This document shows, one piece after another, positions 5,248 through 51,365 of a DNA stretch of 64,000 nucleotides (position 1 is the first letter of the stretch; each line of letters opens with the position of its first letter). The DNA comes from Lepidodermella squamata (taxonomy: Eukaryota > Animalia > Gastrotricha), in the NCBI GenBank assembly GCA_047495785.1, contig JBLDXI010000025.1, forward strand, positions 1,736,001-1,800,000. Reading direction: 5' to 3'. The position numbers and the translations under genes were made by a program. The notes beneath the pieces were generated by a model. It saw only the letters and a program-made list of their open reading frames with translations. It was not told where the DNA came from and did no database searches.

Positions 5248-8200
5248 TCAGTTGTGAATATGCTGCAAAAAGATAGAAACAATTTCCAAGGCATTTTCAT
5301 CATCATCATCGTCATCAGCATCTGAAGGTGAAGGCGACGGGGGTTCGCTGGGTTCCGGCTCCGTAACACCTCGAGACCGCAAAAACGCAGCAACTTCGTC
5401 GTGTTTAGCGCGAATCGCCAAGGCAAGCGGCGTATCACCGAAAATCTGCGTTGCCTCCGCACACTCAGGTTTCAAATCAACAAGATAACGAACTACCTCA
5501 AGATGCCCGTTTTGAGTTGCCTCGTGAATGGGCATTTCCCTCACGAAATTTTTCGACCGCTGCAAAGGATCGACGCCTCTCTCGACCAGAAGTTTAACAG
5601 AATCGAGATTGCCGTCCAGACAAGCTGTAAAGATGGGGGTACCACCGAATTTATTCAACTGATTGACATCCGCTCCGAACTCGTCTATTAACAGTTTTAA
5701 TACTTCGGCAGATTGAGAAGCGGCCACGTGGATTAAAGGAAGTCCATTTTCAGCTTTTGCGACTTGTAGCAACTCGGGATCTTTTTTCATTAAACAACGC
5801 ACTAGATCGACCTGCCCACGCCTTACCGGCATCAAAATCGCCATTTCATTCTGAGGGTCAAGTTGTCTAAGATCGGCACCATTTTCTAAGAGAAATTCAA
5901 CGACATCCTTATTACTTCGATAAACCGCTGCATGAACCGGGGTAACTTCAGCGTCCAAATTCACGCAAGCCCCTTTTTCTGAAACCAAAAACTTAACAAC
6001 CTCTAAACGATCAGCAAAGGCAGCGCATAGCAGCGGAGTCATGGCTTTCTTGCAACGGTATTCAAGCATATCAGGTCGAAGTTCCAGCAAGTACCTGAGG
6101 ACTTCGAGATGCCCGCGGCCAGCTGCGATATGGAGAGGTGTGCCAACCTTACTTTCGCAGGTTAAATCAACATCGTGCTGCGTTACAAGGTACTTTAATA
6201 AGTCGAGATGGCCGTAAAAGCAAGCTACTAGTAACAAGTTCATTCCGTCAAGAATTGGGATTTCTACCAGGTATTTCTGGCAATAAGCCGGAGCTGTTTC
6301 TATCATCTCAAATAAAGCAGCGGAGCCTTCGACAGCAGCCAGCTGGAGTCGCTGGAAAGCATCGGCATTGTTATTAGCGTCCAGTTTTTTATAGAGCTAT
6401 GGCAAGAAATAAAAACAATGAAACGCTATTATCAGCATGCCAGACAAATTGGCAAACCTTGGCTTCGGCCTGTAATAAGATGGACCTGGTCGACACAATT
6501 TGGGGCAAATCGGTGAAGAGCAAGCATCCGTCGATGATGTCCAGAGCTCTTTTTTGACAGCGTTCATGTAGTTCAGATAGGTTCCTTGAAAATTCGTCAG
6601 AGAACGGGCATAAGCGCAGAGATTTCAAATGCTTTTCGATCTGAAACAAGTTAATGAAGAAGATAAATTTATAACTTCCACAATTTTTTGCGAATGCTAA
6701 CGGAAATGGCTTGATCTATGACTAAGGTATGGTATGTGAACTTGTACTTGTCATTTTCGAAAAGAGGCTCAATCACGCTCTCGAACGGACTGGCTTGACA
6801 TGTGGGCTGCTACAATATTTCCTGCCGCCCTGCCAAAGCGCTTATGTCAAACGCAGGGTTGGAAAAAAAAATTTCCCCAATCCCACTTTTTTGAAAGTCT
6901 CCATTTCCCCACGAAAAGTGCCTTTTCGCCAAAAAGCTGTTTTTACCAATTTTACAGATGGTATTGCGTAAATACGAGTCACCAGGTAGTTTCCAACACG
7001 TTTGCTCGTACGGCATATGTTACCTCTCATGGAGCTATTCCTAGTGCTAGCTCACGACTCGTACAGAATTTTGCTGCATTTTATTTAAATGATAACAGCT
7101 TTTGAAGTCCCAAATTATTGCAGTTATTCGGTTTCTAGACAGTTTCGATTGTTAACGACTAAAATAATTTATTCTACGATGACGAGGAATAAAGCAAGCG
7201 AGCCTCAAGCTCAAGCACCTCCTCCTTCTAAGGAGAAAGTTCCGTGCAACTTCTGTTCTCGTTCCATGTGGAAAGATCACCTTGAACGACATAAGCAATC
7301 CGTTCACGCAGCAGAGATGGCAGCAGCAAACTCATCAGTCACCACCCACTTCACGAAACTTTCTACGGCGTCTTCGGGCATGCTAAGCCCTCTTGTCGGC
7401 CATCGGCCACCCTGCCGGCCCAAGCACCGGTTCAAAGCTTTCGACATCCTCTATCAGTTCTTCGTTGCTCAGTCCGAGAAATCAACCAACTGCCTCTTCT
7501 CAGATTATTACGTCAAACGGTAGAATTTCTACGTCAAACGTACAGTTGCTTGCATCTCGCATCTACATCATTGCCCCCGAAGCTAGCGCTCCCTTTTCCT
7601 ACGAATGCGCCGGTGAAGGATACTGCGATTTACGAAACACCCAACAAACTGAGTTGAAGCAAGAGAAATCGTCTGTTCCAGTTCTTCAACGAGTATGTAT
7701 CTTAGCCATCCACAGAATGTCGTTTTCAATCGACCGAAACAGTCATTGCGCCCAGTCAAAACTTCTAGATGTCGCAATAGTTACTTCTGGCGAAATTGAA
7801 GACTATACTGTCTTGAAATGGTGAAATCATGCGGCTGCATGCGCTCAGCATCCAGCCAACCAGTACTCCCAGCGAGCGCGTTTCTAGTCTCGTTGGCCTG
7901 GCAATTTCAGGAGAACTTAGGAAATGTAGTTATTGGAAGATTTTGTGGACGACAAAACGTCGAACTGGCAACCACTTGTCAACTCGGAAATCGAACTATC
8001 AGTCAAAATGGCTCGTGAACGTGAGATGATAACTTTTACCGCCCTAGTCAGTGAATGGTGTCGACACAGACCGAACCTCAAACCACTGTACGAGGAGGCA
8101 TCGTTGAACGAACGCAGACAACTGGATGATACACTTTTAGCTACGTTTAAACAAGCGCAGTGTAGGATTGGTTAACGACCTCCAGCAGACGTGGGATAAC

Positions 8201-11200
8201 TGGCCTCTGGTCGCAATGGCCAGAAGCATCGGATGGAGCCTAGACAATGAGGGTGTTATCCGAGCGGCACAGATGATTCTGACGGACGACTGGTCAAAAG
8301 AGCAAGCCGAGAAAGATGACACGACGAGTATGCCTCATAATTCGTAATCGATTGCAACCCTCTAATTCATACCTTCAGCGCCGAGATGTGGGGGTTATTT
8401 GCTGGAGGCAAGGATGACCTTCAGGTTCATCAAGTTGCCCGTCTTCGATACTATTTTTGACTGAAAGACGCTGACCCCGACATTCTGTTTGGGAAAGCGT
8501 TCATAACGATGCAATGGATGGGTGACACAACGCGGAACCTCGTCTAGAACGCTGAGAAATTTCTATCGGACCTAGGCCTGGACATGGTAACCGAATTGCG
8601 TTGAATAACACATAACTTTTTATATATGGGTCTATTTCACCGCCATGGAAAATAAATGTTTTCCATTGTGATATTCCATTTTTAATTCATTTTTATTTAA
8701 TTTTCGAGCGTGTCGGACCCGAAAAAATGAAGCCAGGAGCGCCACTTGTGCCGGATGTCTGTTGTTTTCGGACACGGAGATTAGCATTTTCGGTCAAAAA
8801 ATATTTTTTCGGGCGTGTCGGACCGGACCCCCGACACAGTGGAAAAAAATAAAATAAAATGAAAATTGTGGACACAATGGTGAGAATTACGGACAAGTGA
8901 TGCATGCCACGTGGCGAAATGGACGTAAAAGGGACAGGAACGCAGACAAGAAAGTATAAATCCCCGGTTTTCGCCAAGAAAACTTTAGCTGGGAAAATTT
9001 CGTAATTGGCGTTTTGATGTCGCGGCTCAAGTTCAGCGTAAGGAGCTAATTGCTTGATTTATCAATTTTCTACTCATCGGCTACTTTATTATCAGATCGA
9101 CTCGATTATTGGGGGTGATGATTCGCCGAGCGCATCAGACCGTGTCCAGGGCGGCGTTGTGCAGCGGGGCGCAATCAATCGTGACGTGGAACTCGACAAC
9201 AATGACTATCTTCCTCCCCTTACTGATCCCGTACCTCCTTTCGCCAACCCGTTTCCTTCCATACCCGCCGCGGAAACAATGAAAAGGAAGCGTGGCCGTC
9301 CAAAAAAGGTGATGTTTAATTTGTCGCTTATATTTGTTAAATGAACTGTCTTTTTTTTTAAGGTAGTTGCTCCGCCATCAAGTGCTCCGTCATCAAAAGC
9401 TCCGCCATCTCGTGCAAATCCTCAGCCGGTTGCCGCGAAGAAAGCGAAACCGGCCAACGCACCGGCGCGAATTTATTCTAGCGACGCGAAACTGTTCATT
9501 CTACTGTTTTTCCGCGATAATCTAGATTTGTTCCAAGGTGGAACCACGCAAAAGAGCACGCTATGGACGCGCTGTGCGGTTCTGATTCGACCACTGTTTG
9601 AAACTTTGAAAAATGTTAAAGGTTCCGAAATTTGTCAACGGTTTCGCACTTGGCAAGGACGATTTCGGCTTGCGCACGACAACAATCTGAAATCTGGCAC
9701 GCAGCGGATGGAAGTTGAATTCATGGAGGTTTGGGAAGAAATCTTCGCAGATAAAAGGCTGCTGGACCCGGACTATGTGGAAAATGCGGGTACGTCTGAG
9801 CAGAAGGTCGACTACAGCATCCCTGATCCTGACGACCCTGTTGTTACATCGAAAAATTCGGAGGAAGTCCAAGAAGCGATTGCGCGTGTGTCGAAGTTGT
9901 TACCTGAGCGAAAACAGCCGGCGAAATCACAAGTCGATGCTCAAATCGAACGAAAAACCAACGGCAATGCGAAGAAGACCAAGGGCCAGGCCACCATCGC
10001 TGAATTGTCGCGTTTGACATCTACGATCGAGACCGTGGCAACGCAGCGAGAACGAGAACGTGAACGCCAACATCAAGAAAAAATGATGCTATTGAAAGAG
10101 TATCTTAAGAAGTAGTAGATTTCTCCAAATTAATTGTCTTTGAAAAGATGGTATAAACTAAACGGGCTATGGGCGTTTTCGAACTTGCGAAATTTGTGTA
10201 TTTTTAGATTATTCTTAAATTTGCATTTGTGGCGGAGAATTTCTTTCATGGCTAATGCTCCGGCTAACCTAATGGCTGTTCTCGAGCTGTTCGCGGAAGA
10301 TGATACGGATGAAGAGTTGGATGAGCTGATTGCTGCTGCCGGTGTTGCAGTTGGCAATTTCTTTCGGTTCCGTCTGAATGAGCAGGTGATTTACCGCGTT
10401 GACAATTTCTTTGAAGAAATAGTCCCCCAAATGTGGGAAGAACAGTACCGGCGCTATTTTCGATACGCTCCACAAACTGTTCGTCAATTGATCGAGCTAT
10501 TGCGAAGACGAGTCGAATATCAGTACGGTGATCTGGAGAAAATTGTTCATCTTTTCCTCAATTTTTCTGCAACAATCGACCCGATTCATCGGCTCGCAAA
10601 CCTTTACAACTACTCCGAAACAACTGCCTGGCGGCGAATCAATCTCGTTACCGATTGGCTTTGCGATCTATCTCCGGAGCTCATCACATGGCCTGACCCC
10701 GCTCAACGCGTCCAAATCGCCGCTGATTGGGAGGAAGAAACAGGTTTTGCAGCGATTGGAGCGTTAGACTGCAGTTTGATTCGAATTACACCGCCTTCCA
10801 CTCCAGGTCGAAACAAGTACTTTTCGCGAAAACACACAAGTGCCATCGTCTTACAAGCTGTCTGTTCCCGCCGCAAGGAGTTCACGGATATTTTCGTAGG
10901 CTTTATCGGTTCGGCCCATGATTCAAGAGTGCTCAGAAACTCCCAGCTATACCGGAACGCCACTCAAAATTACAATGTAAGTTCGATTTATACCCTTTCA
11001 CGTTTGAAGCAACGAAATTTTCATTACATTTGCGAAAAAATCACACAAAATTGCAATTTACGAATTTGTCAGGTGCACGGTGAAACTACTAATTTTTTGC
11101 TTTCATTAAGGAATTTTTTGGAGGTAATTCATTCTTACTGGGAGACTCTGGCTATCAGCCCCGACGCTGGTGTGTCACTCCATTCCGCCAAACCGATAAC

Positions 11201-12445
11201 ATCACCCCCGAAGAACGGAATTTCAATTATCGTCACTCCGTCGCGAGAGTGATAATTGAACAGGCATTCGGGCTTCTCAAGCAAAAATGGCGGCGGATCT
11301 ATCACCTACAATTTCGCCTCAATATTCGGCCCAGTGTTCGTTTCACGAAAGCGATGTGTGTACTACATAATTTCGGCATCCGAGTGGAGGGTGACGCTTA
11401 CAATAACTTGCCCGATGAAGACCCGTTGCCGGCTCAACTTCTCGAGGCAGATCTGCAACTACAAGATGATTTTCTCGCAAATCTCGCTAACCATGAAAAC
11501 GATGACGGGAATGCGGCGAACCAGGCGGAGGGCGAAGAAAGGCGACAGGAAATTATGGCTAATTTACCTTTAGAATGGCTTCTAGATGCTTGATTTATGC
11601 AAAAAACAAGACTTTGCTTAATTTTCGAAAATAAAATAATGTTTTTTTCTAATTTTACTCGCAAAATAATTTCGAACAGATGTCGCCTCTTTGGCACTAT
11701 TTTCGTGAATAAAAACAGCTTGGCAACATTTTTACAAGTGTGTCGGACGCATTTCATATTTTTTTGTTTTTTTTTATTATTTTTTTCATGGCGATGAAAT
11801 AGACCCCATGTACCACAAAGTTATGTAAAAATAGGGATTTGCACAAAAATCTGGTTCTACAAAATCAGACTTGTAGAATGTGTAAGGAAAAAGGAAAATT
11901 TGCCAACCAGTGAAAAAATCCAGCAAATTTCCAGGCGAAGCTTTTCTTTATGCCGGATAAGACAACCATCGCAGAATTCCGCTTCGCAGTGATCACATTC
12001 CTCGCGGTGTTTGATAAAAGCATGCGGACAGTCGTCATGAGGCAGTTTTCGAGCTCGTTTCTGTGACAGACCTTCAACGGCTATTCGCACCTGGATATTA
12101 GGTTTCAAACCTGAAAATAAGAACATTCCAAATTTAATGAAAATATGGAAAAAGTTTAACCTTTGATTCCGTTTTCGTCAAGCTTGCTGATTGTTCGGCA
12201 TTCCGGGCATCGAATAGATTTTTTCTTGTTTTTGTGCTCGAAAATAGCCACCAAGCAAGAATGGCAAAACGTATGTCCGCATTCTGGCAAAATCAGTGGT
12301 TTTTCGTAGGTTCCCAAGCAAATTGGACAAATCAGAAGCTGGGGCAAAATTGCCATAAAAAATTGAATTCAATTCGAATAAATATCCACAGATAATTTAC
12401 CTGTCCAATGAACTCGTCAGGTTCTTCCATTTCTGTGCTTTCCAT
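5248..12445 (-). CDS. TRIM-like RING-Bbox-coiled-coil-ankyrin protein, gene E
   Basis: Exons 12445-12401, 12338-12161 (C3HC4 RING: CPIC...CGHTFCHSC...CPEC), 12110-11908 (B-box-like), 6640-6458 (helical) and 6396-5248 (ankyrins, acidic tail). All junctions are GT-AG and phase-compatible. Intron 6641-11907 is 5.3 kb and filled with transposons. Confidence 0.78.
6856..8000 (+). mobile_element. Degenerate hAT-like DNA transposon
   Basis: CAGGGTTGG-type start; Cys2His2 finger CNFC...HKQSVH near 7245-7305; hAT dimerisation motif ALSIQPTSTPSERVSSLVG near 7841-7900; many frame breaks; ends uncertain. Confidence 0.55.
9017..10115 (+). CDS. Harbinger accessory Myb/SANT-like (trihelix) DNA-binding protein
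   Basis: Exons 9017-9037, 9096-9308 (AT-hook KRKRGRPKK) and 9363-10115 (LWTRCA...GSEICQRFRTWQGRFR; C-terminal coiled coil) splice in frame. Confidence 0.72.
10248..11593 (+). CDS. Harbinger DDE transposase (DDE_Tnp_4/HARBI1-like)
   Basis: Removing intron 10977-11110 gives one open frame with GALDCSLI, GSAHDSRVL, LLGDSGY and ARVIIEQAFGLLKQKWR. Confidence 0.92.
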
Positions 12446-12489
12446 TTTTTTACGAGAAAATCTAGTCCATAATACAACAACACCCACGT

Positions 12490-15400
12490 TTATTGGAGAT
12501 TCTGAGGAGAAGAATGCAAAAATTGAGCAATTTTTTCTTGTTTCAGTCGTTGAGCCAGGGTTAAAGCCGAGTCATTTTCCGCATTTTTCATGTTCAAAAA
12601 ATCCGGGTTTAAATTGAGCAAATACTCAACAAGTTGAAGATTTCCACTTCGCACAGCTAAATGAATCGCCGATTCTTGCTTCGAATTTTCGCCCGAGATC
12701 AACTTCCGAAAATCAGCTCCTTTTTCCACCAAAATTTTCGCAGTTTCAAGATTACCACAGTTGCAGGCGAGAAGAAAAGGGGTAATGCCAGATTTATTCG
12801 CATCTTCAAAATCGAGCTTCAGGTCATCCAGGAAATATTTCAAAATTTCAGGCGATTTCTTGGCGGCTAAATGAACTGGATTATCGCCATTTTCATCCTC
12901 AATTTTCACGATTTCTGGGTCAAAATTTTCCATCAATTTAACGAATTCCAGCCTGTTATCTTCAACAGCTAGTTGGAACGCGTTTTTATGAAACCCGCCA
13001 GTATTTTCACGCAAATCTGCCCCGTGCTCGAGTAAGAATTTGACCGCATCAATTTTTCCAGTTCTCGTAGCTGCTTGAAGTGGCGAACAGAAAGATTTCG
13101 GCAACTTTTGAACCGAAGCCTTCTTTTCTTTAACAAGGTATTCCAGGACTTCAACCGAACCTGAGAACGCGGCAAATGTCAATGGCGTAATGTTGAATCT
13201 TGAAGTTAGACTATCGATGCTAAGTTCAGATTGCAATTCAAGGAAATATTTAACAGTTTCTAAATGGCCAGACATCATAGCCGAATGGAAGGGCTTTATG
13301 CCAACTTCATCTGACCCTGAGTTCAAATCAGCGTTTTGTTCTTCTATCAAATATTTCACGACATCCAGCCGGCCGTCCATAATTGCTTTGTGGAGAATAT
13401 TCCGGCCAAGGTCGGATTTATCCGGCAGTTCGGTCATGTATTTCTTGCAAGCTTTCGGCAGGTTCTGGTTCGCGAAATCCGCAGCGATTTTTGGTAAATC
13501 GCCAAATTTGGCTTTAAAGTGAAATCGTTGCACCAGATTGAATTTCGTGTTTGGATTTTCGAGCAGAGAAGGATCGATAAAGGCGATATCCTCGTGTTTC
13601 TTGATTGCCTTTTTCATTAGAAAAACCTGGTTGTAGTAAAAAATGAAACATTAATAGTGTAATGAAGTAATAACGTAATTAGGCACTCGGTTCGCCGCCT
13701 ACGCAACCGTCGTCATGGTGAATTTCAGGAAAAATTATCCCCATTCCCTATTCTATTCAGCAGCTTGCCCCCTAAACCCCATACTGTCGCCGTTTGCTAC
13801 TCAATACTCGTTCGTCTGGCGAAAATGAGAGAAGCGGATGCTAACGAGCCAACTGAGATGCGGAAGCTTCGTCTAGAAGCAACGGCTGGTCGTCGATTAA
13901 ATGAACCGCCAGAGAACCGGAAGGTTCGTCTTCAAGCAATGGTTGTCCGTCGAGCGAAAGAAACACCTTAGCAACGGGAGATACGCCTGGTAGCAATAGC
14001 CGAGAGCCGAGCCAATGAATCATCGGAATGTCGAAAGTCACGAAAGTTCTAATTGAAAACGTTATTCCGTCGCCATTTGGGGGAAAGTCTGTCTCGCTTG
14101 ACAGCCGTTTCACAAAGATTCGCATATCTACGGAGAAAATGGCTGTGGTACGGATCTGGATCTGATCCGTCAATGATTATCTGAGAGACCTGTTCTAAAC
14201 ACTAGTAATATTAATGGAATAAAATAAAATAACAGTAATTTGTAACTTCTTCACCGGTTAAGCAACGTTTCTCTATATGGTATGGGATATGGGTTTCCCC
14301 CGGCGCTACTGCAGCAGCTCTGCTGTTGCCAATTGAGGCTCCAATCATTTTCCCCGCCTTTCATTGATTTTTTGCCTGTTTAAACATCAACTTTTTAACG
14401 CCCTAAAAATATATATATCCTATCGGCTTTGTGCCAACATCATCATGTCATTCGACAAAAATGATAATCAGTTCCTCAATGAGCTTTCCGACGAAAGTGA
14501 AGCCCGTATCATGGCAATATTTGATGAGCTTCAAGTACAGTTTGATAACCATAAAGCTACGGTCACGTCGCAGGCAAAGGAGCTTGCAATGCTTCACGCC
14601 CAAGGTGACAAGTTTGAGGAAGAACAGCTTCGAAACTATGTTATGGTCTTTGGAATCCCAGAAGCTGACGGCGAGGAAGTCACGACCACGATCAAGGAAA
14701 TGGTTCCTGAGCTAAGTTTCCGCACAGTGCACTGTTAGATCAACCGTCCGGAAATCACGGCACTGACTCTGACGCCGAGTGAATTTCGCAGACTGATGTG
14801 ACTAATAAATACTCATGATTTAACTTGAATGACGTTGTGAATGACTCGAATAATTTGAAAGAGAATGCCGGTTATTGTTTGGTTGATTTGGAAAAAATTT
14901 CAACAAATCGGTTGTCATCCAACACCGCCCCTGCAACGACAACTATATATGCGACGCCACTCCTTGGGGATTAGGGATGACCTTTATTAAATTTTTTGCT
15001 ACTACAATTTTTACTGCCTTGTTAATTATCACATAATATTTTATAGATTTTTAAATGAGTAGCAACCAAACAAAATCATAACCAAGTCTTGGTTATCCGG
15101 AATGCGTGTCCTAATTTGATCAGTGCTTTAAGTTCAGCAAGGATAGCTCAAGGAGCTAATGCACAGGCTATTCTCGCGTCTTATGGGCAACCTTCGGCCC
15201 ACCTCCAAGTGCAGTTTACTAACTTGCAGCAATTTGCAAATCAGACTGGCCGAGGTGGTATCATACCTGCATTTCAAAACAGCTTTTACTCTGAACAACC
15301 GCCCACAGCAACGTCCCAACAAACTCGCAAAAGCCGAGTGCGCCGAATCAGGGTAATGCATCGGGCTTCAACTAACAGTCAGGGTTAAAAATATACTTAG

Positions 15401-16530
15401 CCGACGAAAATACGCAGTATTTTGCTACAGCGTAGTGTATAAGCTTTCTGACAACAAGGACCGGGGAAAAGGCACTAACTCTTCATAGAAAATTGTATCT
15501 AATCACCGCGTTCAACGGAAAAAGCGGGGCACGGCGATCAAATCCTCAGACGAACAGGTTTAGGTGCCCGAATACTTGCGGTTTTCGCTACACGTGTTTT
15601 TCTCTCATAAATGGAGCTTATTATGAGTTCTACTTTTGTTGACATTCGGAATGAATGTACAAAGAGAAATGTTGCGGTTTTTCTTGCTGAAAATAAACGG
15701 CGAGTTGAATCTTTGACTAACCTTGCTTTCGGCATTCATAATTTTCATGTGGATATCAGCCAATTTCGCAAGATCGAAATATAAAAGAGACGTGTTCGTA
15801 ACTTCCTCCAGCAAATCACGAGCTTCGTCGAGAAGTTTTGTCGCCAATTCAACAATATTACTCGATTTCGACTGCGTCAATTTATCCTTTTCCATTTCTT
15901 CCGCATTTCTTTTCGAATTTTTCAGCCGCTCGTTTGCCAAAATGCCTTCCAGCGTATACTCAACGCTTGCATACGCCCATCTTATTTCAGTTTTCAGCGA
16001 TTCCATATGACGAAAAATGCAACCGTCGCAGTATTCATTGCTGCAATGTGGGCATTTGACCAGTTTTAGCAGGAATCGATGAGCGCATTCGTCCAAGTCA
16101 AGAAAATTTAGGCTAGTTTTCGCAACTTTCAACGCGTTAAAGCCGTCCAATGCCCGCTGAATCGCAATGTTAGTTTTCAAATCTAGAAAAATTAAACATA
16201 TCAGAACATTAAAAATCGCGTAAATTCCGTTTTACCAGTTTCGAAATTTCCGGTTTCTAGCACATTTTCAGCCTCGCATTCAATGCAGGTGATGACGTCA
16301 GCTAGCTCTTCCTTCCGCTCGATTGTGAGTTTGTGATACTCCTCGAGGCATCTCAAGCAAAACGTGTGGCCACAATTCGGCAATATTTTAGGCAAAATGA
16401 AAGGTTGTGAGCAAATGCCGCAAAGGAAAAGCTGCAAATAAAATTGCTAGATTTTCCCGATTGAATAAAAAAAGAATACCTGGTCGGCATTTTCTAACTT
16501 TTCAGTAACTGATTTAGCCAGCTGATCCAT
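12490..16530 (-). CDS. TRIM-like RING-Bbox-coiled-coil-ankyrin protein, gene D
   Basis: Exons 16530-16480, ~16432-16236 (RING), 16182-15722 (B-box-like and coiled coil) and 13626-12490 (ankyrins); phase-0 intron 13627-15721. Confidence 0.82.
13810..14010 (+). mobile_element. Helitron-type STPR-like repeat remnant
   Basis: Repeated motif NEPTEMRKLRL / NEPPENRKVRL / KETP*QREIRL resembles the ETxEQRxxRL repeats of Helitron Rep-helicase N-termini; contains a stop. Confidence 0.45.
14445..14738 (+). mobile_element. LINE ORF1-like fragment
   Basis: Coiled coil followed by EEEQLRNYVMVFGIPEADGE, like the EQxxRxxNxxIxGIPE motif of LINE ORF1. Confidence 0.5.
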
Positions 16531-35071: not shown

Positions 35072-37660
35072 TCATTTTGTTGACATCACGACTTGATGAG
35101 CGAGTTGTGCCATGGTCAAAGGCAAACAATGCAACAACAATTTATCAGGAAAATCGGCAGGTGCGAGATCCCGAGGCGTTTGCCCAGTTTTATTCACCGA
35201 ATAACCAAAACGCTTCAACGCCGTTTGTTCCCAACAGAATTTCACAACTTTCACACTGTTGTTCGCCACTGCCAAATGAAGAGCGCTATTGCCAACATCG
35301 TCTACATTTATTTCGAAGTTCGCGCCCTTGTTGAGGAGGTATTCGAAGCTCAAAACGTGATCCCTGACTGCGCACATTAGCAGAGGAGTGGGTTCTGAAC
35401 GTATCATAGATGCGATATTGATTGGCATTTTTAATTTTTCGATAAAAAATGCCAGAACATCCCTAGCCGTGGCATCTTCCGCGCAGCTTGCCGCCCAATG
35501 CAAGCAATTCCCGCCCTGAAAATCAACAGCTTCGTAGGCCTTAGGCGATTTTTCCAGCAAGCATCGAACGATAGGCAGAGAGCCGGATCTCGCAGCTAAA
35601 TGAATTGGCATAATACCGTATTTGTCTGGATACGCGTCGAATCCATGTCCCATGAGGAATTCCACTGCCTCAACGCTATTACTACAGGCCGCGAAATGAA
35701 GACCCGACTTTCCGTCAAAAATATCGTTTCGACAATCTTCTAACAGCAGCCTTGAAACTTTTATGCTGCCGTTAAGCGCTGCCACTAAAAACGGGGTATA
35801 GCCTGCCTTATTGACGGCAGTAATCATCTTCCGATCATGAACTGTAAATTCATGCAAACAATTGTTAGCGAAATTAAATCGCACATCGTACCTGTGAACA
35901 TTTCCACAATTTCATCGTAGTCGTCTTCAGCTGCGGTGTGAATAGCTGCGAAACCTCGAACATCTTGAATCGAAACATCAGCCCCGTGATTCAGTAAAAA
36001 TTTGACAACGTTTTTGTGGCCTTGCGAACTAGCTAAAACGAGTGCAGTTGAGCCATCATAGGTGGCGTTGACGATGGGTATCACAGCCTCGATAATTCCA
36101 AGAGGAGCAGAATCGCCTTTAAGCGCCATCAAATGTAATACAGTTCTGCCTCTATTGTCGACCACATGAGCTAAGGTGGGGTCGACTCTGAGTAGGAACT
36201 CGAGAACTTCAGGGTGACCAGCGGCTAAATGGAGGGCAGTCTTCCCAACATTATCTCTCATTGCGGTATCCGATCCGAATTTCGAGATGAGAAGCTGAAC
36301 GCATTGAAGAGACCCTGATGCAGCGGCTTGATGAAGCAAAGTTCGACCTTTGTCAGAATCATCGCGATGTCGAATGATGAGATTCAAGCCAGGCTCTGAC
36401 AAACTCGACAGCAAGTCAAAATTTCCGGACTTGGCCGCCGCGTGAAAATCATTGTAAAAATGATCCTGAAAAAATGGATATAGCATATAGCCAACCATTC
36501 CAAAAAAGAAATTCTTTCACACCTTTGCGATTTCAAGCTCAGAAGATTTATTGGATAGCTCTACTGAGAAACCTTGCTTGAGCAAATTTTCCTGGAGATC
36601 GGTTAGATTTGGTTCCACAACGATTGAGACCTCGGCAGTTGCCATTTCGCTGAATTCAATTTTGCGCATTCTAGCAACCTGCAAAACCAAGACGTTAGAG
36701 AAGAATCACGACAAGAAGCACTCTATATCACCTTCTGGCATTTCTCTATGACTTGCTTGTGTAGACCAATAAATTTATCGCCGGGATTGAAAAGACACGA
36801 TTTTTGCATAACATCTTTAAACATGCCATCTATTTCGGCTTTTGATTCTTTCTCCAACATGTTACGCTCAATATTCGCAATCTGCTTCCTTTTTATATCG
36901 TGGACCTGAGAGATCAAATCCTGGCAGTGAGACTTGATAGCTTCCTGAAGAGTCGCGCTCAATCTTTCTCCGTGTGATAAAATCTCCTTTTCCACATTCG
37001 AGGCGTGATTGGTTATTTTAGCAGTTATCGCATGAAGTTGAGTTTTGTAATGGGACATCGTGGGATCAAACTGCACATCCAGCTGAAACAAAAATGGCAA
37101 CATTGCGGTTTACGAAGATACAAAATCATTCATTACCCATCCTTTGGCGAGACCGATTTCCCCCCTCAAGAATTCAAGATGAACAACGAAGCAATACGCG
37201 CAGAAAGTTTCGCCGCAATGACCGCATAATCTGGCGTTATCTTTCGAGAGACTAGAGAGATGATTGCACGACTCCGCAAACTTTGCTTTCTTGAAAGACT
37301 CATTCTCTTGTTTCAGAACTTCTAAGGCTCGTTTTACAGGAAAATTAGCTGGAAAAATAAAAAATCCCAAATAGCTTTCATAAATTTCATTTTGAATTAC
37401 GTTTAATAGAATCCGCTGAAACACTCGCTGCGCTACGGCATTCAGGACAGACCAATTTTCCGCCTTTGGTTTGCAGATTGCTCAGCATGGATTCTACGCA
37501 GTTGGCGCAGAAAGTGTGCCCGCATTGCGGCAAGTTTTTCGGGTCCTCAGGTAGCTCAAGGCATATAGAACAGGTAAGAGCCTAGGAAAAACGCTGCTTT
37601 TCGAGAAATTCGAGCTATAACTGAAATTACCGCCTCGAAAGGACAGCTCAATCGGGACAT
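35072..37660 (-). CDS. TRIM-like RING-Bbox-coiled-coil-ankyrin protein, gene B2
   Basis: Seven-exon structure like B1 with only short introns; RING CSIC...CGHTFCANC...CPEC; ankyrin exons ~36466-35892 and ~35842-35072. Confidence 0.86.
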
Positions 37661-40800: not shown

Positions 40801-41604
40801 CTAATCCGTCGAGCTGATCGTGAGATACTAGGCTGTTCAGCGATTCAAGCCGCTCTTTCTCGAGATCAGCCACCTTTCTTTTCAGGTTTTCCACCTGCTT
40901 CGCCATCAACTTCCGAAAATCCTCTATTAAAACTTCACTTGATTGTTCGATTTCTTCAACAACAGCTCTCGCATTTTCGCTGATTTTCGAGCGGATTATA
41001 TCAGCTTTTCTATCAATATCTTCCAAGTTAGTTTCGTAAATGTTTCGAAGCTGGAAACGAGAGCAAAATAATGAGAAGTTACGATATGATAATATTTTCT
41101 ATTTTTACTTTGTTACACGAAAAGGTAGCCTCGAGTCGAATTCGTTCCAGGTGAAGAAAGAAACAGGAAGGGCAGAATTCTTGCTCGCAATGTTCACAAA
41201 TTTGCAGGTCCGACCTGGCCAAAACACGCAAATGGCAGCAATTTTCGCCCGGTTGCCATTTTGGTTCAGAATCGAACTGTGTCTTCAATATCACAACTGC
41301 CCTTTTGACAGCGTAATTGATCTTCAATGACTCGATGCCATCTACGGTAATAGTAGTCTTGGAGCGGCATTCAGGGCAAACAAGACCATCGTTGCTATTT
41401 CTAGCCAAGTTTTCCAGACAAGGAGCGCAAAATGAATGTCCGCAGTTAGGCAACATTTTAGCTTCTGAGCGCAAGTCTAGACAGATCGAACAGCTTAATG
41501 CCTGCAGAACGGCATGACAAGCCTCAGTTAAAATCACTGACAACAGCTAGCAATAACCAAACCTCTGAAATGGCACTTCTTGGCGTTGCTGCGCATGCTG
41601 ACAT
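37898..41604 (-). pseudogene. TRIM-like RING-Bbox-coiled-coil-ankyrin gene A3, ankyrin exon interrupted by a MITE
   Basis: A-type exon structure; removing 38824-39752 and one TSD copy restores ...GASSGSLDVVMHL... in frame. Confidence 0.8.
38824..39752. mobile_element. Non-autonomous Mutator-like element (MITE)
   Basis: About 190-bp inverted termini built of TTTTCAGCAGCAGA subrepeats; 9-bp TSD CATCTAAAG at 38815-38823 and 39753-39761. Confidence 0.9.
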
Positions 41605-42034: not shown

Positions 42035-44677
42035 TTATTGCATCCTAGCCCGCTTCCGACTGCCATTGCTCTTCGGGAGAGAGTTGGCTGGGGATTTTTC
42101 GCTTGTAGCTGAGCTCAACACCACGCGATTTCCGGGTTGTATCGTGGCCAGAGGCAGTTGACACAGCAGCTTTAGATCAGGAAAATCGGCGGGTGCGAGT
42201 TCCCGTGGCGTTTTGCCAGCATTATTCTTCGCAGCATGAAAACGCGCCAACGTGTTTTGTTCGATACAGAATTTCACGATTTTCACGCTTTTGTACGCCA
42301 CTGCCAAATGTAGAGCATTATTGCCGTCATCATCAATATTGAACTCAAAATTTGCTCCATTGCTAAGAAGATACTCAAAACTCAAAACCTTGTCGGTTCT
42401 CGTGCTAATCAACAGAGGAGTAGGCTGTAGATGATGCCGCGCTATGAGGTTGACTGGCAAGTTATATTTCTCGACGAAAAACGCCAGAATGTCTCTAGCG
42501 ATTGCGTCGTCCTCGCCACTCGCCGCACAGTGCAAGCAGTTGCCGCCTCGACCGTCGATAGCTTTATAACTTTTCGGGGATTTTTCGAGCAAGTATTGAA
42601 CAATCGCCAGGGGGCCGAATCGAGCAGCGCCGTGGAGAGGGAGATTCGGGCACATCATGACTTGGTTAACATCGAAGCCATTGTCAACCAGGAGTTGAAC
42701 GGCCGCCAAGCTCTTACTGCAAGCAGCGAAGTGAAGCGCTGTCGCTCCGTTTACTTTGTCATTTCGACAATCTTCTAACAGCAGCTTCATAACTTGCAAA
42801 CTGCCCCTTCGGGCAGCGAACAAAAAAGGAGTGAAACGCAAATCGTTGCTAGCCAAAACTACAGTGGGATCGTAAACTAAAATTCCAACTCTTGTGACGA
42901 TCCATATAACACAAATAAGGAACAGTACCTCTGATCAAGTCAACGACTTCAGCATGATCCTTCTCCGCAGCTAGGTGGATAGCTGTGTTGCCATAGGCGT
43001 CGCGAATCGAGGCGTCAGCACAGTGATTCAGCAGAAATTGAACGTCATTTTTATAACCTTTCGAACTAGCTAACATGAGTGCCGTTGAGCCATTGAAGGT
43101 AGCGTTTACAACACGTCTCAGAGCTTCGAAAACTCTAGGCGGAGCGAAATCTCCTACAATTGCCATCATATGCAATGCAGTTCTGCCTTCATTGTCAATA
43201 GCTTCAGCTAGCGTCGGGTCGACTTCGAGTAGATTCTCGAAAACTTCAGGATGCGCGACGGCTAAATGGAGGGCTGTCATTCCAATGGTATCCCTCATTT
43301 TAGTTTCTGATCCAAATTTCTCCACGAGGAGCTTAACGCATTGAGTAGACCCTGATGCGGCGGCTTGATGAAGCAAAGTTCGGCCGTTATCCGAAGTATC
43401 CTGATGTCGAACGATGAGATTCAAGCCTGGCTCTGATAAAACCGACAGCATATCAAAATTTCCAGACTTGGCCGCTGCGTGAAAATCAGCATAAAAAAGA
43501 TCCTGAAAACAGCTCAACAAATTATTCAACTAAGATGATTGCTTCCTAACCTTCGCGATTTCGAGCTCTGAAGATTTCTTGGATAGTTCTACCGAAAACC
43601 TTCTATTGATCAAGTCTTTTTGGAAGGTGGCTATGATTGGATCCAGGGAAATCGAGATCTCGGCAGCGGCCATTTCGCATAATTCTATTTTGCGCATTTT
43701 AGCGACCTGTAAATTTCAAACAATGGACAAGAGTAAGAAAATAAGCTAATTGTCAACCTTCTCGCACCTCTCCGTGATGAGCTTGTGTAAACTAACAAGT
43801 TTATCACCTGGATTGAACAGAGAAGACGTTTTTATAACATCGTTGAACATGCCCTCGATTTCGGATTTGGAATCGTTTTCCATCGCGTACTTCATCAAGT
43901 TTTCTATCTGTTTTGTCTTCATTGCATGGACCTGAGAGATCAGTTGCTGACAGTGAGACTTGATAGCTTCCTGAAGGGTTGCACTCAATCTTTCTCCGTG
44001 TGCTAAAATCTCTTTTTCTGCATTCGAGGCGTTACAGGTAATTTTAGCAGTCATGACTTCGAGCTGAGATTTGTATTGAGACTTGGCAGGGTCGAACTGA
44101 ATATCCAACTGAAACAAAAACGAAATTGTTAAAATTGGGATATAACACGAATCTCTGTATTACCCATCCTTTGGCGAGACTGATTTCCCCTCTCAAGAAT
44201 TCAAGGTGAGCTATGAAGCAATATGCGCAGAAAGTTTCGCCACAATGACCGCAAAGCCTCGCATTATCTTTAGACAGACCAGCAAGATGAACGCATGACT
44301 CCGCAAACTTTGCTTTCTTGAAAGACTCATTCTCTTGTTTCAGGACTTCCAAGGCTCGTTTTACAGGAAAATTAGCTGGAAAAATAAAAAATCCTAAATC
44401 GCTTTCATAATTTTCATATTGAATTACGTTTAATGGAATCCGCTGAAACGCTCGCCGAGCTACGAAGACCAATTTTCCGCCTTTGGTTTGCAGATTGCTC
44501 AGCATGGATTCTACGCAGTTGGCGCAAAAAGTGTGCCCGCATTGCGGCAAATTTTTTGGGTCTTCAAGCAGCTCAAGGCATATAGAACAGGTAAGGGCCT
44601 AGGAAAAACGCTGCTTTTCGAAAAATTAGAGCTATAATTGAATTTACCGCCTCGAAAGGACAGCTCAATCTGGACAT
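42035..44677 (-). pseudogene. TRIM-like gene B3 with a frameshifting deletion in the RING
   Basis: Relative to B2, GTCCTGAATGC is replaced by T (net -10 nt), removing the final CPEC; downstream exons look intact. Confidence 0.72.
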
Positions 44678-44850: not shown

Positions 44851-47800
44851 TCACATTTTCGCGCCTTTGGCTTTAAGCAATTCAACAAGTTCTTCATGTT
44901 CCTCTTGCAAGGCCAAAGAAAGCGGCGTATCACCATCGCCATCCTCGGCATTCAACAAATCCGGTTTCGCCCCAAGTAACACCCCAACAACCGCCGAGCA
45001 GCCATAGTAACAGGCTGAATGAATAGGCAACGAATCATCGTCAGCCAGCGCCATCAAATCAGCACCTTTTCCAATGAGGAATTTCACGGACTCTACATGG
45101 CCTTCAGTCGCCGCAGTGAACAGAGCTGTCCATTTCAGGCCATTCCGAACCTCTAAATCCATCTTAAAATCATCTATCAAGCATTTCAGTACTTCTATTT
45201 GATCATGTCCAGCAGCCTCGTGGATAACTTTATTCCTCGATTCGCCACATTCGATGTCTAATAACTCAGGTTTCGCCTGCAATAGGTATTTTACAACATC
45301 GACATGGCCAAATCTAGCCGCCCAATGTATGCAAGACATTTCATTCTGGCCGTAGCGATCTTTGACCAAATAATTAGCGCCCTTCTCGATCAAATATTTC
45401 ACAATCTCGAGGTGGCCGTCGAAACTTGCGTAAAGAAGCGGAGTAGTGTTGAAGAATGACCCTGCCTCAATATCAGCCGATTTTTCTTCAATTAAAAACT
45501 TTACAAGGTCAATGTGACCATTCTCAGCGGATATTGATAGGCAGGTATCTCCGCAAGCGTTTTCAGCCTCAATCATTTCGTCACCTCCTTTTTCGAGTAA
45601 AAACTCAACAATTTCTTTGAAGCCATAAGTAGCGGCTAAATGAATAGGTAAAGAGCCAGAAATCGAGTCTCGAGCCCATAAATCGGACCCTAGCTCATCC
45701 ACCAGGTACTTCACAACTTCTAAATGGCCATTTCCAGCCGATTGATGTAGCACTGTTCGACCGTGAAAATCTTTATCGCGATGTTCAACAATGTATCGGA
45801 TGCAGTTTTTTGGTACGCTGTCCACAGATGCGAAAATTTGCTTCAATTGATCGATATCTCCGACACGAGCTGCCATATGAACCCGCATTGTTAGAGGCAA
45901 AGCTGTTAGGAGGTGCCGCTTATCACTTTCTTTCACGTTATCGAGGTTAAAAGATGCGACTGAATTTAAATCGATAACGCCATCTTTAGCCAGACCTAGG
46001 CCCAAATATTCATTCAGCATTGACAGGAACATGAAGCCACACTAGAAAAGAAGGGCGAGAATGAAAAATTAAGGTGACTATTTCAGACAGTTACCTTCAG
46101 CTCTTTCGAAGTCAAGGTTTCGTGATAGTTAGCCAACTTATCAATCGGAACATACAGTAGTGAATTTTCGTTGATTTCAGCAATTTGCTCCACGATTTCG
46201 TCCAATTTCAGTAATTTCATCGCTTCTGATGCAGTTTCGCGGTCGATTGCATCCCTAACACATTCGGCTATCAAGTCAGAATATCGGCATTTCTTTGCTT
46301 CAACGTCATTTTCATCACTGTTTTCAGATTCGAGAGGGCGCTTGGCGACATTAGCTTCGGCAGCATTTTCCTTATTGCTTTCAGTTTGGTTTTTCTCCTC
46401 GCTTTGTGGGTTTCTCCTTGTCATTAAACCAAAAATAAGAGGCGCCGCTGAGTAGAATCGATGTTCAAGCTAAAATAAATAAAAATTGAACAATTCGTCA
46501 ACTCATTTTATAATATTTAGTCCGAAGAATTTTTCAAATTATACACTGATAGACCCCCGATAAAAGAATTCCCTCGTTTGAAGAGCCTGTTTGATTGATC
46601 CCTTTAATTTGATTTGTTTAAAAGCAATTCAAACTCGTGTAATCAAGAAAGGAGCCCCTGATATTAACCTAGCCGTGCGACCAATGAACCTGCTGTTCTT
46701 GCGAAGAAAAGGATGCGGGAATTCTCGGATATTCTTACGAACCGAGCAGTTTTTCAGCTGGTTGAAATTGCTCGTCAATAGTGCATCCATGTCAGCGATA
46801 GCTAGATGCTAATGATGGCCCTAAGGATACACCCCCGAATTCACCCGGGGATGACAGTGTTCAAGGCGTCCAACGGCTGGCTTGACAACCTGAAGAAAGG
46901 TTCTGGGCTGAGGTCGGTGAAAATTCACGGAGAAGTATGCCGATATCGCCGCGACCAATCAATTTTGGGCTGACCTAAGAAACCTGATAATCGAGAACGG
47001 CTTTCAACTGGACGAGTTGTATAATTTTGAATTATTAGAAAAAGCGAATGGAACTCCTGAAAAAACCATTCGCTTTTTCTAATAATTCAAAAATCATTAA
47101 ATAATTCACCGGAAACCTGAAACGGAACTGATACTATCATGGCACTCTGACTACTCTACTGCGGCTGCACTTTCTTTTTTCACCATCGAGCTTCCTTCCT
47201 GGATATCATGCTCATTAAATAAATAAATAATAAATAAATAAATGCTGATGTACTGGCACAATAAGTCCAATGAGTTCCGAAAAGACATAGTCCTGCCAGT
47301 TGGAGACGATGGGCATGGTAAGAAGATGTCTTGCACGATTGATTTTCGGATAGCAGAACCTAATGGAGAGTTGCGGCAATTACACCTGACGGAGCAACAA
47401 CTATCTCAACTAAGCACGACAGCGGGAGGCTTTGAGTTGGCATGCTATTCTACTCCCCATGTTTATGTTTTTATGCTGCCCAAGACTGCTTTTGAAATCG
47501 CGCCTTGCTCGCTTCATCTGGAAAACTGTGTCACTGGCTCTGCTTTGTAAGCGTTAAGAACTCACACAATTATAGAACAGTTGCGCTAGATTCATGCATG
47601 CTCGCCACAACATTGAAATTTAAATTTAAATTTAAATTCAAGATGCTCACAAAATTGAAAAGGAGAACTTGGCTAGTGCAGTCAAGAACATAACGGAAGT
47701 TCTTGAGCGAAGCTCGAAAAACCTTACTGTGCAGATATCAACACCAAATCCGCAAAAAGTCAGCATTAGAAGAGCTAATCACTACGCGACCACAATTTTA

Positions 47801-50800
47801 GTTTTAAAACTATATGCACAAACTGATCTCATTATTAAAATGAAGTCGTTAAAGTGGCTTGCAATGACTGGTTCGATTTTCCATGACTCGGGCCCAAACT
47901 GGCACTTTGAGATTGTACAAGGTGCTTGTATGGCCGCTATGTGAACTTCTACAAACGTTGGCTACTTGATAATCATCAAAGGGCAAGAAACAACTGGACT
48001 CTCAAGGAAATGCAAATTAATGCGATTGAGAAAGGCTCAATGAGAGAAGTGTGTCTCAAGATTCAAAATTCTTGTGCAAGCTGCCAATGCTAATATTAGC
48101 AGCCGATCACGTTCGGCAAGCAGCGCACATCGACCTCGGCTTCGAGGGCACAAACCTCCTCAACTAAAGATCAACCGAAAAAACGCGTTCGTGGTTCGGC
48201 AAAACATTCCAAAATTCCCGACGAAAGTTTTATCATTAAGAAATGAGCTTGAACTTCCCAAGTACTCTAAGTACTCAAAACAAACACGAGAAGGATTTAC
48301 ACCCAACGCCTGAAGAGCTCGAAAGCAAAGCGAAAAGAGTACGCTTGACGGAATTCTTGGATCCACCTCAAGATGAGAATTTCGAGGCAACCAATCAGCA
48401 TCAGGCCGAAGAGCAATCAAACCATATTTCCAATTTTTTCAGCTTTTGAAATCCTGATTAAAACGCTGAGCGAATTCATCGTGAGACTGAATGAAAAACC
48501 CCCAAGTTAATTACAATTCCAGCGTTTCCTGGTACCGTCCACATACTTCCCATTGGAAATACGGCTGATGGACAGGCGGTTCATGAAATCGGAGAATTGA
48601 TTTGGCTTCGATCTCATCGAAACCTGAACTTCGAACATCACATTCGTGCGAAGACAGCATAAACTACATTAATGCAGCAAAAATATTGCACTCAACGGTG
48701 GTAAAAATTACTCTGTTTTGATTATCGGAAATTTCGAAAATTTCGAACTTCAATTTTCAAATTCCCAGTTTGGCTATCAAAAGTTGATAAGAGTGGTAAA
48801 AACAAGGCGCAGACGACTACCAGATTCGTGGTACGAAAGTACGCCCTCTGAAGAAAGGCCTCGACTGTGGCCACTACAGCTTCGATGGCACTCGAGTGGT
48901 ACCCGATTTCGCGACAAATTTCAATGAAGGATTTCCTCGACTGGCTCCACAGGAGCCGGCCAGAGGATATATAGGGACGCCTCTGCGAGCCCATGATGGA
49001 TCCCTACTACACGCAAAATACCTCAATCACAGAGGGTTCCTAAATCTACTCGATGATGGGCGACGGTGCAGCCAGTCGCTAAAACAGGCGGCGCGTGGAT
49101 GCGACATCTTCGTTGGCGTCGAGACACATGGACCAGCGGCTCACCTGGAACTAGTCGAAAATTCATCGAAGATCATCGAAAGTTTGGGAAATTTCCCAGT
49201 TCGGCTATCAAAAGTTGATAAAATAATAAAAATTGAGAAACGCTAATCCTTCTGGAAATACTCCAAATCGTCTAGGGACTTTCACTTCCTGATTTTAATA
49301 CGCATATCAAGAACTTTCGTTGGGATCGGCTCGCCAAGTACGAAGGAAGCCTCTTGGCAATTTCAAAATTGATGCGAAGACCAAGAAAATATCTGACAAT
49401 CTCAGCAGCGCACATTTGCGACACCGTTCTACAGACTAACATTCCTGTTGAGCAAATTTGTTTCGAAACGCAGAAAATTTGTACAAATCGAAGCATTGAC
49501 TAGTGTTACAGTCCGGCCTCAGATTGGGCGGCTATTCGCCGCTGTTTTATCCGAATGATTTGCGCGAATTGGCGAGTCTATCAGGGTTCCAGTGGCTGAG
49601 ATGGACTGGCAATCAATCCATGTCAAGAATAAGCGACTTCCTTCTAACTTTCAAATTCAGGCTCCTCGAAAAGCACAAACCGGCAAGAATGCCTAGGGCC
49701 TTCACTATCGACTGCTGCTATGCAGAAATGAATGCCATCTTGATGTCTTTCTGCAAAGCAGATGTAGCAAAATATCTCGCTGAGAGCTTTTCTTGGTTCC
49801 AGGCCACGACCAACGATGAGTTGATTAGAGTGCCGCAAGAAGCCATATTACTCTTCTTATGTTTTAACCATCTGATCAATGACCTCTCCCGAAGGTAATA
49901 ATTGTCATGAAACAGGGTTAATGCTTAATGCAGACATGTGCCTTTAGATTACCGCCTTCAATGGACAAGCAAAACAAGCGTTGGGCGCTCAAATGTTTTG
50001 GCATGATCCACAGGTATATTTCATTACCAGGATTCGGGGCAATTATTGTTAAATTCTTCGTAGATTCGAGCTGCCATATTTAGTTATCTGACGCACCGCA
50101 GCTAGGGAGCTATTCACTGGGTGCCTTGACTTGAAATTTAAATCGACGGGCAGCTTTCTCAATTCTCACCGCCCAGGTCGACTGGGAAAGTTCACAGATG
50201 GACCTGAGTCACACGCCGACACACGCTGCTGATCAACGACGATGCTATAAAAAAAAATTAGCTCTGAACACGTTGTCTAAATTCGAGTGCTATCTACATG
50301 ACATGAATCGCCAAGTCTGATTTCAACATTTGTTAACAATAAAATTTTACTCGGTTAAGTTGTATTTTGTCAATGTAAACAAGTTGGTAATGAGAGGATT
50401 AACCGCGCAGAGATCATTACTTATTGCACGGTGTGGTCCACACTGGTAAACTTGCATTGGGAAACTTGCAAGGGGAAAGTTGAATGAATGAAATAATTGT
50501 GAATATCGGTCGAAGAAATTTCATTTTTTCCCCAGGTCATTTCACGAAAACTTGAAAAAAAATTCAAATAAATATAGGAAACTAATCATTAATCGACAGT
50601 AATTTTTAATTTTTCTACTCAAAATAGTCTAAACAGTTTCGAGGAGTCGGATTTCGACATTTTTTCAACTTATCGACTACTTCTGAAAAATTCTAGTGTA
50701 ACCAAAAATTGTCCCACTTGGTTACATAAGTACCTGAAAATCCCTGAAAATTCAAGTGTCAAAATAAAAAATTCAACATTTCAAAATTAATTCAATTTAA

Positions 50801-51365
50801 AATTTAATTTAAAAACCCGCCTTTTCAAAAAAAATTAGACTAGAAAATGAAGAACAAACCTCCTTTTGCAGCCAATTGATTTCTATTCTGAGCATTTCTT
50901 TGTGACGAAGAATGCATCCCTCGCAGAAAGAAACGTCGCAATGAGGACATTTCACCTTCTTAGAAACAAAGGAATGAGGGCACACCTCGAACGGCTGCTT
51001 TTCTCTAGGTATTGTCTGGTTATATTGATCGATCGCTTTCTGAAGTGAAACATCGTCCATGAGAGCTGAAAAAATTGGTTCGAAAATTGTGAATAAAATT
51101 TATTTAGTTATCTACCCCGAACGCCATCTGTCGGATCCAACGGGCTGAGAGTACGGCATTCTGGACATGCTATACCCGACCAATCCCGCGTATTTTCAGC
51201 GACGGAAATCAAGCATCTCTGGCAGAATGTATGGCCGCAATTCGGCAGGATTTTTGGCAACAAATATTGCTCATAACAAATGGAACAGTTGAACGGGTTA
51301 TCAGGACTACTGTGACCTGTTGCCGACTTCATTTCACGCATGAACTGCGTGCGATTTTCGGCCAT
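44851..51365 (-). CDS. TRIM-like RING-Bbox-coiled-coil-ankyrin protein, gene C
   Basis: RING exon 51365-~51116, B-box exon ~51065-50860, helical exon 46469-46095, ankyrin exon ~46041-44851; phase-0 intron 46470-50859. Confidence 0.8.
46840..47030 (+). mobile_element. pogo/Tigger (CENP-B-like) transposase fragment
   Basis: FKASNGWLDNLKK...IHGE...LIIENGFQLDELYNF. Confidence 0.75.
47025..47092. repeat. Perfect 27-bp inverted repeat with a 14-nt spacer
   Basis: TTTTGAATTATTAGAAAAAGCGAATGG ... CCATTCGCTTTTTCTAATAATTCAAAA. Confidence 0.85.
49400..50250 (+). mobile_element. Possible NOF-FB/MULE-like transposase remnant
   Basis: PRAFTIDCCYAEMNAILMSF...KYL...LFLCFNHLI resembles the D...CxxH signature of MULE-family transposases. 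Confidence 0.4.

Follow-up and report, generated by a model that had tools for sequence, protein, structure and literature searches.

Whether the RING, helical and ankyrin open reading frames (ORFs) that follow one another along a stretch of the Lepidodermella squamata genome are parts of single genes, and what the products of such genes would do, is the question raised by this locus. The stretch analysed, hereafter the window, comprises 64,000 nucleotides of contig JBLDXI010000025.1 (positions 1,736,001 to 1,800,000), and all coordinates below are those of the window. The answer reached here is that these ORFs probably make up a tandem array of real, transcribed multi-exon genes which encode dimeric, TRIM-like RING ubiquitin ligases (E3) with ankyrin repeats as substrate receptors. 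The G+C content of this eukaryotic DNA is ~43%. A six-frame motif scan places nine gene starts, each with a RING and a B-box-like finger, together with one RING relic on the minus strand between 5248 and 51365, and detects zero RING or second-finger ORFs on the plus strand of the window. The ORFs carrying a RING and a second Cys/His finger lie at 12368-11860, 16446-15608, 20636-20076, 28149-27703, 34713-34122, 37581-37113, 41546-41082, 44598-44047 and 51368-50812, and each is followed downstream by helical ORFs and long ankyrin ORFs. An earlier reading made from the sequence alone had proposed a tandem array of nine such genes and a relic sharing one RING, B-box-like, helical and ankyrin architecture; the scan and the gene models described below agree with it in the count, in the common architecture and in the observation as a whole. 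The ends proposed for the array are exact, 5248 being the stop of the first gene (g1) and 51365 the ATG of the last (g9).

Evidence that the parts are joined comes from complementary DNA (cDNA) contigs of the run X1, which was labelled as RNA by a guess. Depth over 35600-41599 tracks the predicted exons and falls to about zero in the introns and in a transposon described below. The contigs skip 35891-35842, a 50-nt GT..AG intron between the two ankyrin exons of g6 (35892|35841), as well as 41108-41051, a 58-nt intron that in g7 separates the RING/B-box exon from the helical one (41109|41050), both in frame. A third contig ends at 36467 followed by nine loose letters, TTGCGATTT, which match the sequence from 36525 onwards, so that the contig links 36465 to 36523, the predicted splice between the coiled-coil tail and the ankyrin region of g6. 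Since depth follows the exons and the contigs skip predicted introns, X1 holds spliced transcripts. One loose X1 end also resembles the reverse complement of the SMART cDNA primer.

These junctions bear directly on the suggestion that RING/coiled-coil and ankyrin belong to separate neighbouring genes, and that they look fused only because adjacent ORFs were read as one. Such an arrangement would find precedent in the ankyrin-only genes with their own ATG which adjoin the array (59-4371), it would accommodate a nuclear-receptor ORF situated between the helical and ankyrin exons of g4, and no single molecule has been seen across both parts. The suggestion is nevertheless highly improbable. The cDNA join 36523|36465 coincides exactly with the splice predicted between coiled-coil tail and ankyrin. 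Near the 5' ends of the ankyrin exons there is no start codon, and in g6, g8 and g9 these exons continue the upstream frame over GT-AG introns of 48-57 nt. In addition, relatives carry the helical region and the ankyrin repeats in one ORF. Four contigs from three other samples (L001, L005, L006 and L007) contain a RING/B-box ORF, a gap of 80-240 nt (80 nt in L001) and an ORF of ~450 aa that combines helical and ankyrin parts; in the last three of these, from two assemblies, such units stand in tandem with RING ORFs of 102-196 aa. These units are metagenome relatives from other organisms, with coiled coil and ankyrin in a single ORF, and their donor site falls at the position matching that of the alpha genes of the window (see below). 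The placing of RING and ankyrin exons in one transcript unit, as proposed in the sequence-only reading, is thus upheld by three cDNA junctions and by these relatives.

Gene models were built by enumerating in-frame GT-AG introns and by aligning the upstream regions of paralogs. Spliced models were joined in silico for reading-frame checks and for substitution rates only, all searches and fold predictions having used unjoined sequences. Most introns are 48-58 nt, and intron positions and phases are conserved within each of three old subfamilies: alpha (g3, g4, g7), beta (g5, g6, g8) and gamma (g1, g2, g9). Complete ATG-to-stop frames of 614-772 aa are present in six genes (g2, g3, g4, g5, g6 and g9). 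Alpha genes consist of an ATG mini-exon of 13-14 codons, one RING and B-box exon, two helical exons and one ankyrin exon. Beta genes open with an ATG mini-exon of 10 codons, followed by a RING, a B-box, two helical and two ankyrin exons, while gamma genes have a RING exon, then a B-box exon with or without the helical region, then ankyrin. All genes are on the minus strand.

Within the alpha subfamily, g3 (16700..20584, 770 aa) consists of a leading exon (E0) at 20584-20546, RING and B-box at 20483-20091 (Pfam RING, E 6e-8), helical exons at 20034-19678 and 19622-19455 and ankyrin at 18055-16703. The splice models for g4 (21608..28219, 772 aa) give E0 at 28219-28178, RING and B-box at 28122-27730, helical exons at 27671-27315 and 27262-27095 and ankyrin at 22966-21611 (Pfam ANK, E 1.4e-73). 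The 4.1-kb intron 3 of g4 contains, on the same strand, a nuclear-receptor gene fragment (23876-25210; zf-C4, E 1.4e-11) with further ORFs downstream of the zf-C4 domain; it is a nested gene, or else it signals that the long splice of g4 is unused. The third alpha gene, g7 (37898..41604), has E0 at 41604-41563, RING and B-box at 41501-41109, helical exons at 41050-40694 and 40637-40476, and an ankyrin exon in two pieces, 40239-39753 and 38814-37901, on either side of a transposon.

Of the beta genes, g5 (28547..34721, 755 aa) has seven exons by splice models, at 34721-34692, 34635-34455, 34399-34188, 34135-33785, 33731-33576, 29937-29364 and 29310-28550. An intron of 3.6 kb, listed as its intron 4, contains GC-rich repeat-element debris, and retroelement debris of this GC-rich kind is seen at 31500-33300 in the long intron of this gene. 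The seven exons of g6 (35072..37660, 757 aa) lie at 37660-37631, 37581-37401, 37348-37137, 37082-36732, 36678-36523, 36465-35892 and 35841-35075, from splice models together with the X1 joins. The remaining member, g8 (42035..44677), was read from a DNA alignment with g6 and g5 and is intact over 781 codons apart from the lesion described below.

In the gamma gene g2 (12490..16530, 614 aa), read as an uninterrupted coding sequence over splice candidates, E0 is at 16530-16480, RING at 16431-16236, B-box with helical region at 16182-15722 and ankyrin at 13626-12493. For g9 (44851..51365, 673 aa), splice models place RING at 51365-51116, B-box at 51065-50860, the helical exon at 46469-46095 after an intron 2 of 4.4 kb, and ankyrin at 46041-44854 (Pfam ANK, E 3.9e-76). 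The motif scan and splice candidates for g1 (5248..12356) give RING at 12356-12161, a B-box-like exon at 12110-~11908, a possible helical exon within 6715-6458 and ankyrin at 6396-5251 plus the stop (Pfam ANK, E 4.9e-64). Its middle is an intron of ~5 kb whose exon structure is without a model, and in it tblastn, queried with the helical parts of g2 and g9, gave no coiled-coil exon of their kind. A Harbinger/PIF-type transposase (DDE_Tnp_4, E 1e-12; plus strand, 10134-11252) sits inside this intron, within an element region of 9528-11593 (plus strand) that includes a second, upstream ORF.

The encoded RING is an N-terminal C3HC4 domain, with Pfam zf-C3HC4 and zf-RING_UBOX above their cut-offs in the window ORFs (E 2.5e-9 to 6e-8). 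A family profile of 51 sequences aligns over positions 3-121 with the RING-B-box of TRIM2 (PDB 8ams_C; E 2e-30) and also matches TRIM3, TRIM56, TRIM21, TRIM25, TRIM28 and PML, whereas a single window sequence matches only the TRIM2 RING and the helix that follows it (E 2e-9). The nearest solved RING relatives are TRIM2, TRIM3, TRIM56 and TRIM32, and an AlphaFold model (pLDDT, the predicted local distance difference test, 89) superposes on the TRIM2 RING with 1.7 A over 72 residues. The post-RING helix motif (L-x-x-N...L) aligns with TRIM2 residues 60-87; its N63 is nearly invariant in the 51-sequence alignment, and the helix of the model spans residues 64-79; in TRIMs this helix serves RING dimerisation. 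Alignment, profile and superposition together support the TRIM-type RING module and the post-RING motif noted in the sequence-only reading. At the other end, the C-terminus consists of ankyrin repeats only, with Pfam Ank, Ank_2, Ank_3, Ank_4 and Ank_5 all far above cut-offs (Ank_2, E 1e-27 to 4e-76). Twelve repeats of the 33-residue type were parsed by hand in g4 and in g6, the register being set by hand from anchors after a home-made hidden Markov model had given too few repeats.

Assembled in order, the protein would comprise a mini-exon leader, a C3HC4 RING of TRIM2/3 type with its flanking helix, a divergent B-box, ~170 helical residues and ~12 ankyrin repeats. The helical region may dimerise the protein, as in TRIMs, the RING of this predicted ligase would recruit a charged ubiquitin-conjugating enzyme (E2), and the concave ankyrin groove would hold the substrate, so that each paralog might ubiquitinate its own set of targets.

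Several points weigh against so complete a description. The second finger has eight invariant ligand-type residues in the arrangement C-x-H-x8-11-C-x-H-C-x4-C-x2-C-x3-H, the family profile aligns it with TRIM2 B-box2, and hhalign compares the window-type finger with that of the relatives at 98% probability (E 3e-13), a match limited to the second half of the finger. Of those relatives, 20/35 match ANCHR-like_BBOX and 11/35 match zf-B_box; the Pfam B-box models (zf-B_box) do not detect the finger of the window genes even with E relaxed to 10, and when the finger was submitted by itself, fold searches gave weak zinc-finger matches only (Foldseek E >= 1.5, VIA Z <= 3.8). The B-box of the sequence-only reading consequently survives in its ligand spacing and its hhalign match and falls short in Pfam; the finger reads as a divergent B-box, the name being used in a qualified sense. 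The helical region (169-173 residues, 0-3 prolines, 28-38% charged) has a heptad score only ~1.3 standard deviations above shuffles, and its coiled coil is presumed from composition. Ligase activity, dimerisation and substrate binding are likewise predicted functions, drawn by analogy. On the RNA side, no single molecule spans RING to ankyrin or any whole gene, the three junctions are short contigs from two different paralogs (g6 and g7), one of them rests on only 11 letters past the joint, and the long splices (2-5 kb) of g1, g2, g4, g5 and g9 are without RNA support. The hand-set ankyrin register, moreover, may misassign loop positions.

Purifying selection acts on all domains. By the method of Nei and Gojobori, applied within the alpha and beta trios, the ratio of non-synonymous to synonymous substitution rates (dN/dS) stands at 0.06-0.14 in RING/B-box, 0.21-0.28 in ankyrin and 0.17-0.38 in the helical part. 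The paralogs are old, with dS between 0.25 and >1. In sliding windows of 30 codons the proportion of non-synonymous differences (pN) is below that of synonymous ones (pS) throughout, except in the C-terminal tail of g6/g8. Within the repeats, the target-contact positions 2, 3, 5, 13, 14 and 33 have pN/pS of 0.45-0.69, compared with 0.24-0.34 at framework positions and 0.24-0.37 on the outer face. This groove excess is found in both trios (Fisher p against outer positions 1e-5 to 0.08 per pair). Of the 28 positions, the eight fastest include all six contact positions, and at position 3 pN ~ pS. It is therefore at the partner-binding sites of ankyrin proteins that the paralogs diverge most, though not beyond neutrality. 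Divergence focused on the canonical binding groove fits diversified specificity, whatever the targets may be. The synonymous rate is also uneven along the genes: in the helical exons of g3, g4 and g7 (such as 19678-20034, 27315-27671 and 40694-41050) dS is 0.06-0.25, against 0.6-1.4 in the RING exon of the same gene pairs, which suggests gene conversion between tandem copies.

It is against this background that an immune role has to be judged, in which the proteins would be diversified intracellular receptors or restriction factors whose ankyrin arrays tag foreign (viral or parasite) proteins for ubiquitination in the manner of TRIM5 and the finTRIMs. The tandem expansion, the signs of birth and death (a relic, a frameshifted copy and a transposon insertion), the centring of divergence on the groove with pN ~ pS at position 3, and the mosaic dS suggestive of exchange between copies are all features that such receptors might display. 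In the same genes dN/dS stays far under 1, both domain by domain and across all 30-codon windows of the ankyrin array, the paralogs are old, and g9 is nearer to a relative from another organism than to its own array, a sign of conserved orthology rather than of fast turnover; ankyrin-based E3 receptor families with housekeeping targets (ASB, FEM1, MIB) are, besides, common. An immune role is accordingly unlikely. The same doubt attaches to its broader form, that of genome-wide, diversifying cytosolic sensors, each with a groove suited to its own foreign protein, which the RING would then mark for destruction or signalling; were this true, the family would stand as the invertebrate equivalent of TRIM5 and the finTRIMs, with another fold for recognition. 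The sequence-only reading had set the family beside fast-evolving TRIMs that are immune restriction factors. Neither trait is supported here, given the rates above and purifying selection in all domains. The evidence favours ordinary diversification of substrate receptors over an arms race.

Turnover of copies is nonetheless visible. The relic (20973..21284), taken from the ORF listing, is a lone RING fragment of beta type with its CGH motif spoiled and no downstream exons. In g8, a single 10-bp deletion after 44466 removes the last RING Cys pair (the CPEC ligand pair) and shifts the frame, so that g8 is either a recent pseudogene or a null allele. The ankyrin exon of g7 is interrupted by a non-autonomous DNA transposon (38815..39752; 929 bp plus one copy of the 9-bp target duplication, CATCTAAAG), flanked by a perfect 9-bp target duplication and ending in terminal inverted repeats of 192 nt (95%) built of ~20-nt subrepeats, much like a miniature inverted-repeat transposable element. 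The gene is otherwise intact, and the frame reads through for 785 aa once the 938-bp insert is excised. A contig from X2, a DNA run of another sample, joins 38814|39753 with an overlap of nine letters, which is the empty site, and the insertion is for this reason polymorphic; X2 depth over the element is 3-7x that of its flanks, the element being multi-copy. With one relic, one frameshifted copy and one copy carrying a polymorphic transposon, the array shows ordinary birth-and-death.

That the array is in general decay, with most copies functionless pseudogenes, might be read from these same three casualties together with the middle of g1, which is without a model. This was already disfavoured and is scarcely credible in view of the six complete ORFs of 614-772 aa, the dN/dS of 0.06-0.38, the spliced transcripts from g6 and g7, the empty-site allele of g7 and the presence of one lesion only in g8.

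Relatives were sought in several collections. The N-terminal part of g9 is 50% identical to P0127, a protein from another sample, against 44% to g1 and 38% to g2; being closer to this protein than to its neighbours, the g9 lineage seems older than the split from that organism. The family had been called lineage-specific, a description that holds only in part, given this affinity and the similar tandem arrays in other organisms. A phmmer search with the RING/B-box exon of g7 against 1.84 billion cluster representatives returned 2,452 matches at E <= 1e-3, none below 1e-30. Short metagenomic ORF fragments score best, the top full-length proteins among those scanned are of RING-(B-box)-NHL type, and a motif scan of the top 150 of the 2,452 revealed no ankyrin array. 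Protein searches with the ankyrin exons of g9 and g4 retrieved generic ankyrin proteins only, at up to 43% identity and none with a TRIM-type RING, a weak blank since the collection lacks the proteome of the source genome and the candidate list fills up with ankyrin words. The ESM Atlas yielded generic TRIM2/3-like RING clusters only, and no complete RING-B-box-coiled-coil (RBCC) ankyrin protein was present among the database matches inspected. Full-text literature searches found no description of RING-B-box-ankyrin proteins, nor any paper citing the sample accessions from which the relatives come.

On the minus strand at 59-4371 are four tandem, single-exon, ankyrin-only genes or ORFs, of 248, 247, 150 and 290 aa and all starting from an ATG of their own, which share 45-50% identity with one another and are nearest to the ankyrin domain of g9 (31-39%). 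They have the same opening, 'HEAAK.GN...HKD..D..RT.L.QA', as the ankyrin domains of the ligases, and from this and the similarity to g9 the array runs on as RING-less ankyrin proteins. Beyond the other end, also on the minus strand, two adjacent ORFs (283 aa plus 366 or 284 aa) occur as a duplicated pair at 51459-53717 and 58570-60310. Both 283-aa ORFs begin identically with 'MVVPEAKR.LWFRSN', and with no Pfam family the pair forms an orphan two-gene unit in two copies. A Ty3/gypsy-type RNase H-integrase fragment lies on the plus strand at 56000-57400 (Pfam RT_RNaseH, E 2e-23).

The C-terminal recognition domain is the basis on which TRIM ligases are classified, and a large, conserved, expressed TRIM-ankyrin family would add a class to that scheme. 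It would also supply, in nature, a set of 'designed-ankyrin-like' binders coupled to a ligase, which could help in finding the ubiquitin substrates of invertebrates, and the array is a potential model of how recognition modules diversify.

Among known systems, the TRIM-NHL proteins (TRIM2, TRIM3, TRIM32, TRIM56, TRIM71 and NHLRC1; Marin's subfamily C, classes VII and X) are nearest in RING sequence and fold. They share the helix after the RING with its L-x-x-N motif and the order of RING, zinc finger and long helical region, and the best full-length relatives of the window's RING/B-box exon are RING-(B-box)-NHL proteins. The window family differs in ending in about twelve ankyrin repeats rather than in filamin/NHL, in a first B-box ligand pair of C-x-H and not C-x2-H or C-x2-C, with a finger that Pfam misses, and in its large tandem arrays where TRIM-NHL genes are single conserved orthologues. 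Clustered PRY-SPRY TRIMs such as TRIM5 and the finTRIMs resemble it in their tandem, multi-copy RBCC genes and in variation of the C-terminal recognition module; their recognition fold, however, is the B30.2 beta-sandwich and not an ankyrin solenoid, and the window family has no signature of positive selection and a RING that is not closest to theirs.

ASB, FEM1, MIB and XBAT proteins, the nearest analogues in function, are ligases that use ankyrin repeats as substrate receptors. In ASB (ankyrin plus SOCS box), FEM1, MIB1/2, plant XB3/XBAT and BARD1 the likeness lies in the ankyrin array as the target-binder of a ligase and is one of analogy only. MIB and XBAT have a C-terminal RING, unlike the N-terminal TRIM-type RING of the window family; RING_XB3-XBAT31 and BARD1-type Pfam models remain below cut-offs on the window RINGs, and in the exons scanned Pfam finds no SOCS box, MIB/HERC2 or BRCT domain, the ankyrin exons giving ankyrin families only. 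With respect to the TRIM classes C-I to C-XI (COS-FN3, PRY-SPRY, PHD-bromo, filamin-NHL, MATH, ARF, TM and others), the C-terminus of the window family fits none, and the word 'ankyrin' is absent from two surveys of the TRIM family, in keeping with the sequence-only reading, which had set ankyrin outside the described C-terminal classes. The RBCC-ankyrin design is real and apparently undescribed, on a scaffold that is TRIM-like and nearest to that of the TRIM-NHL proteins.

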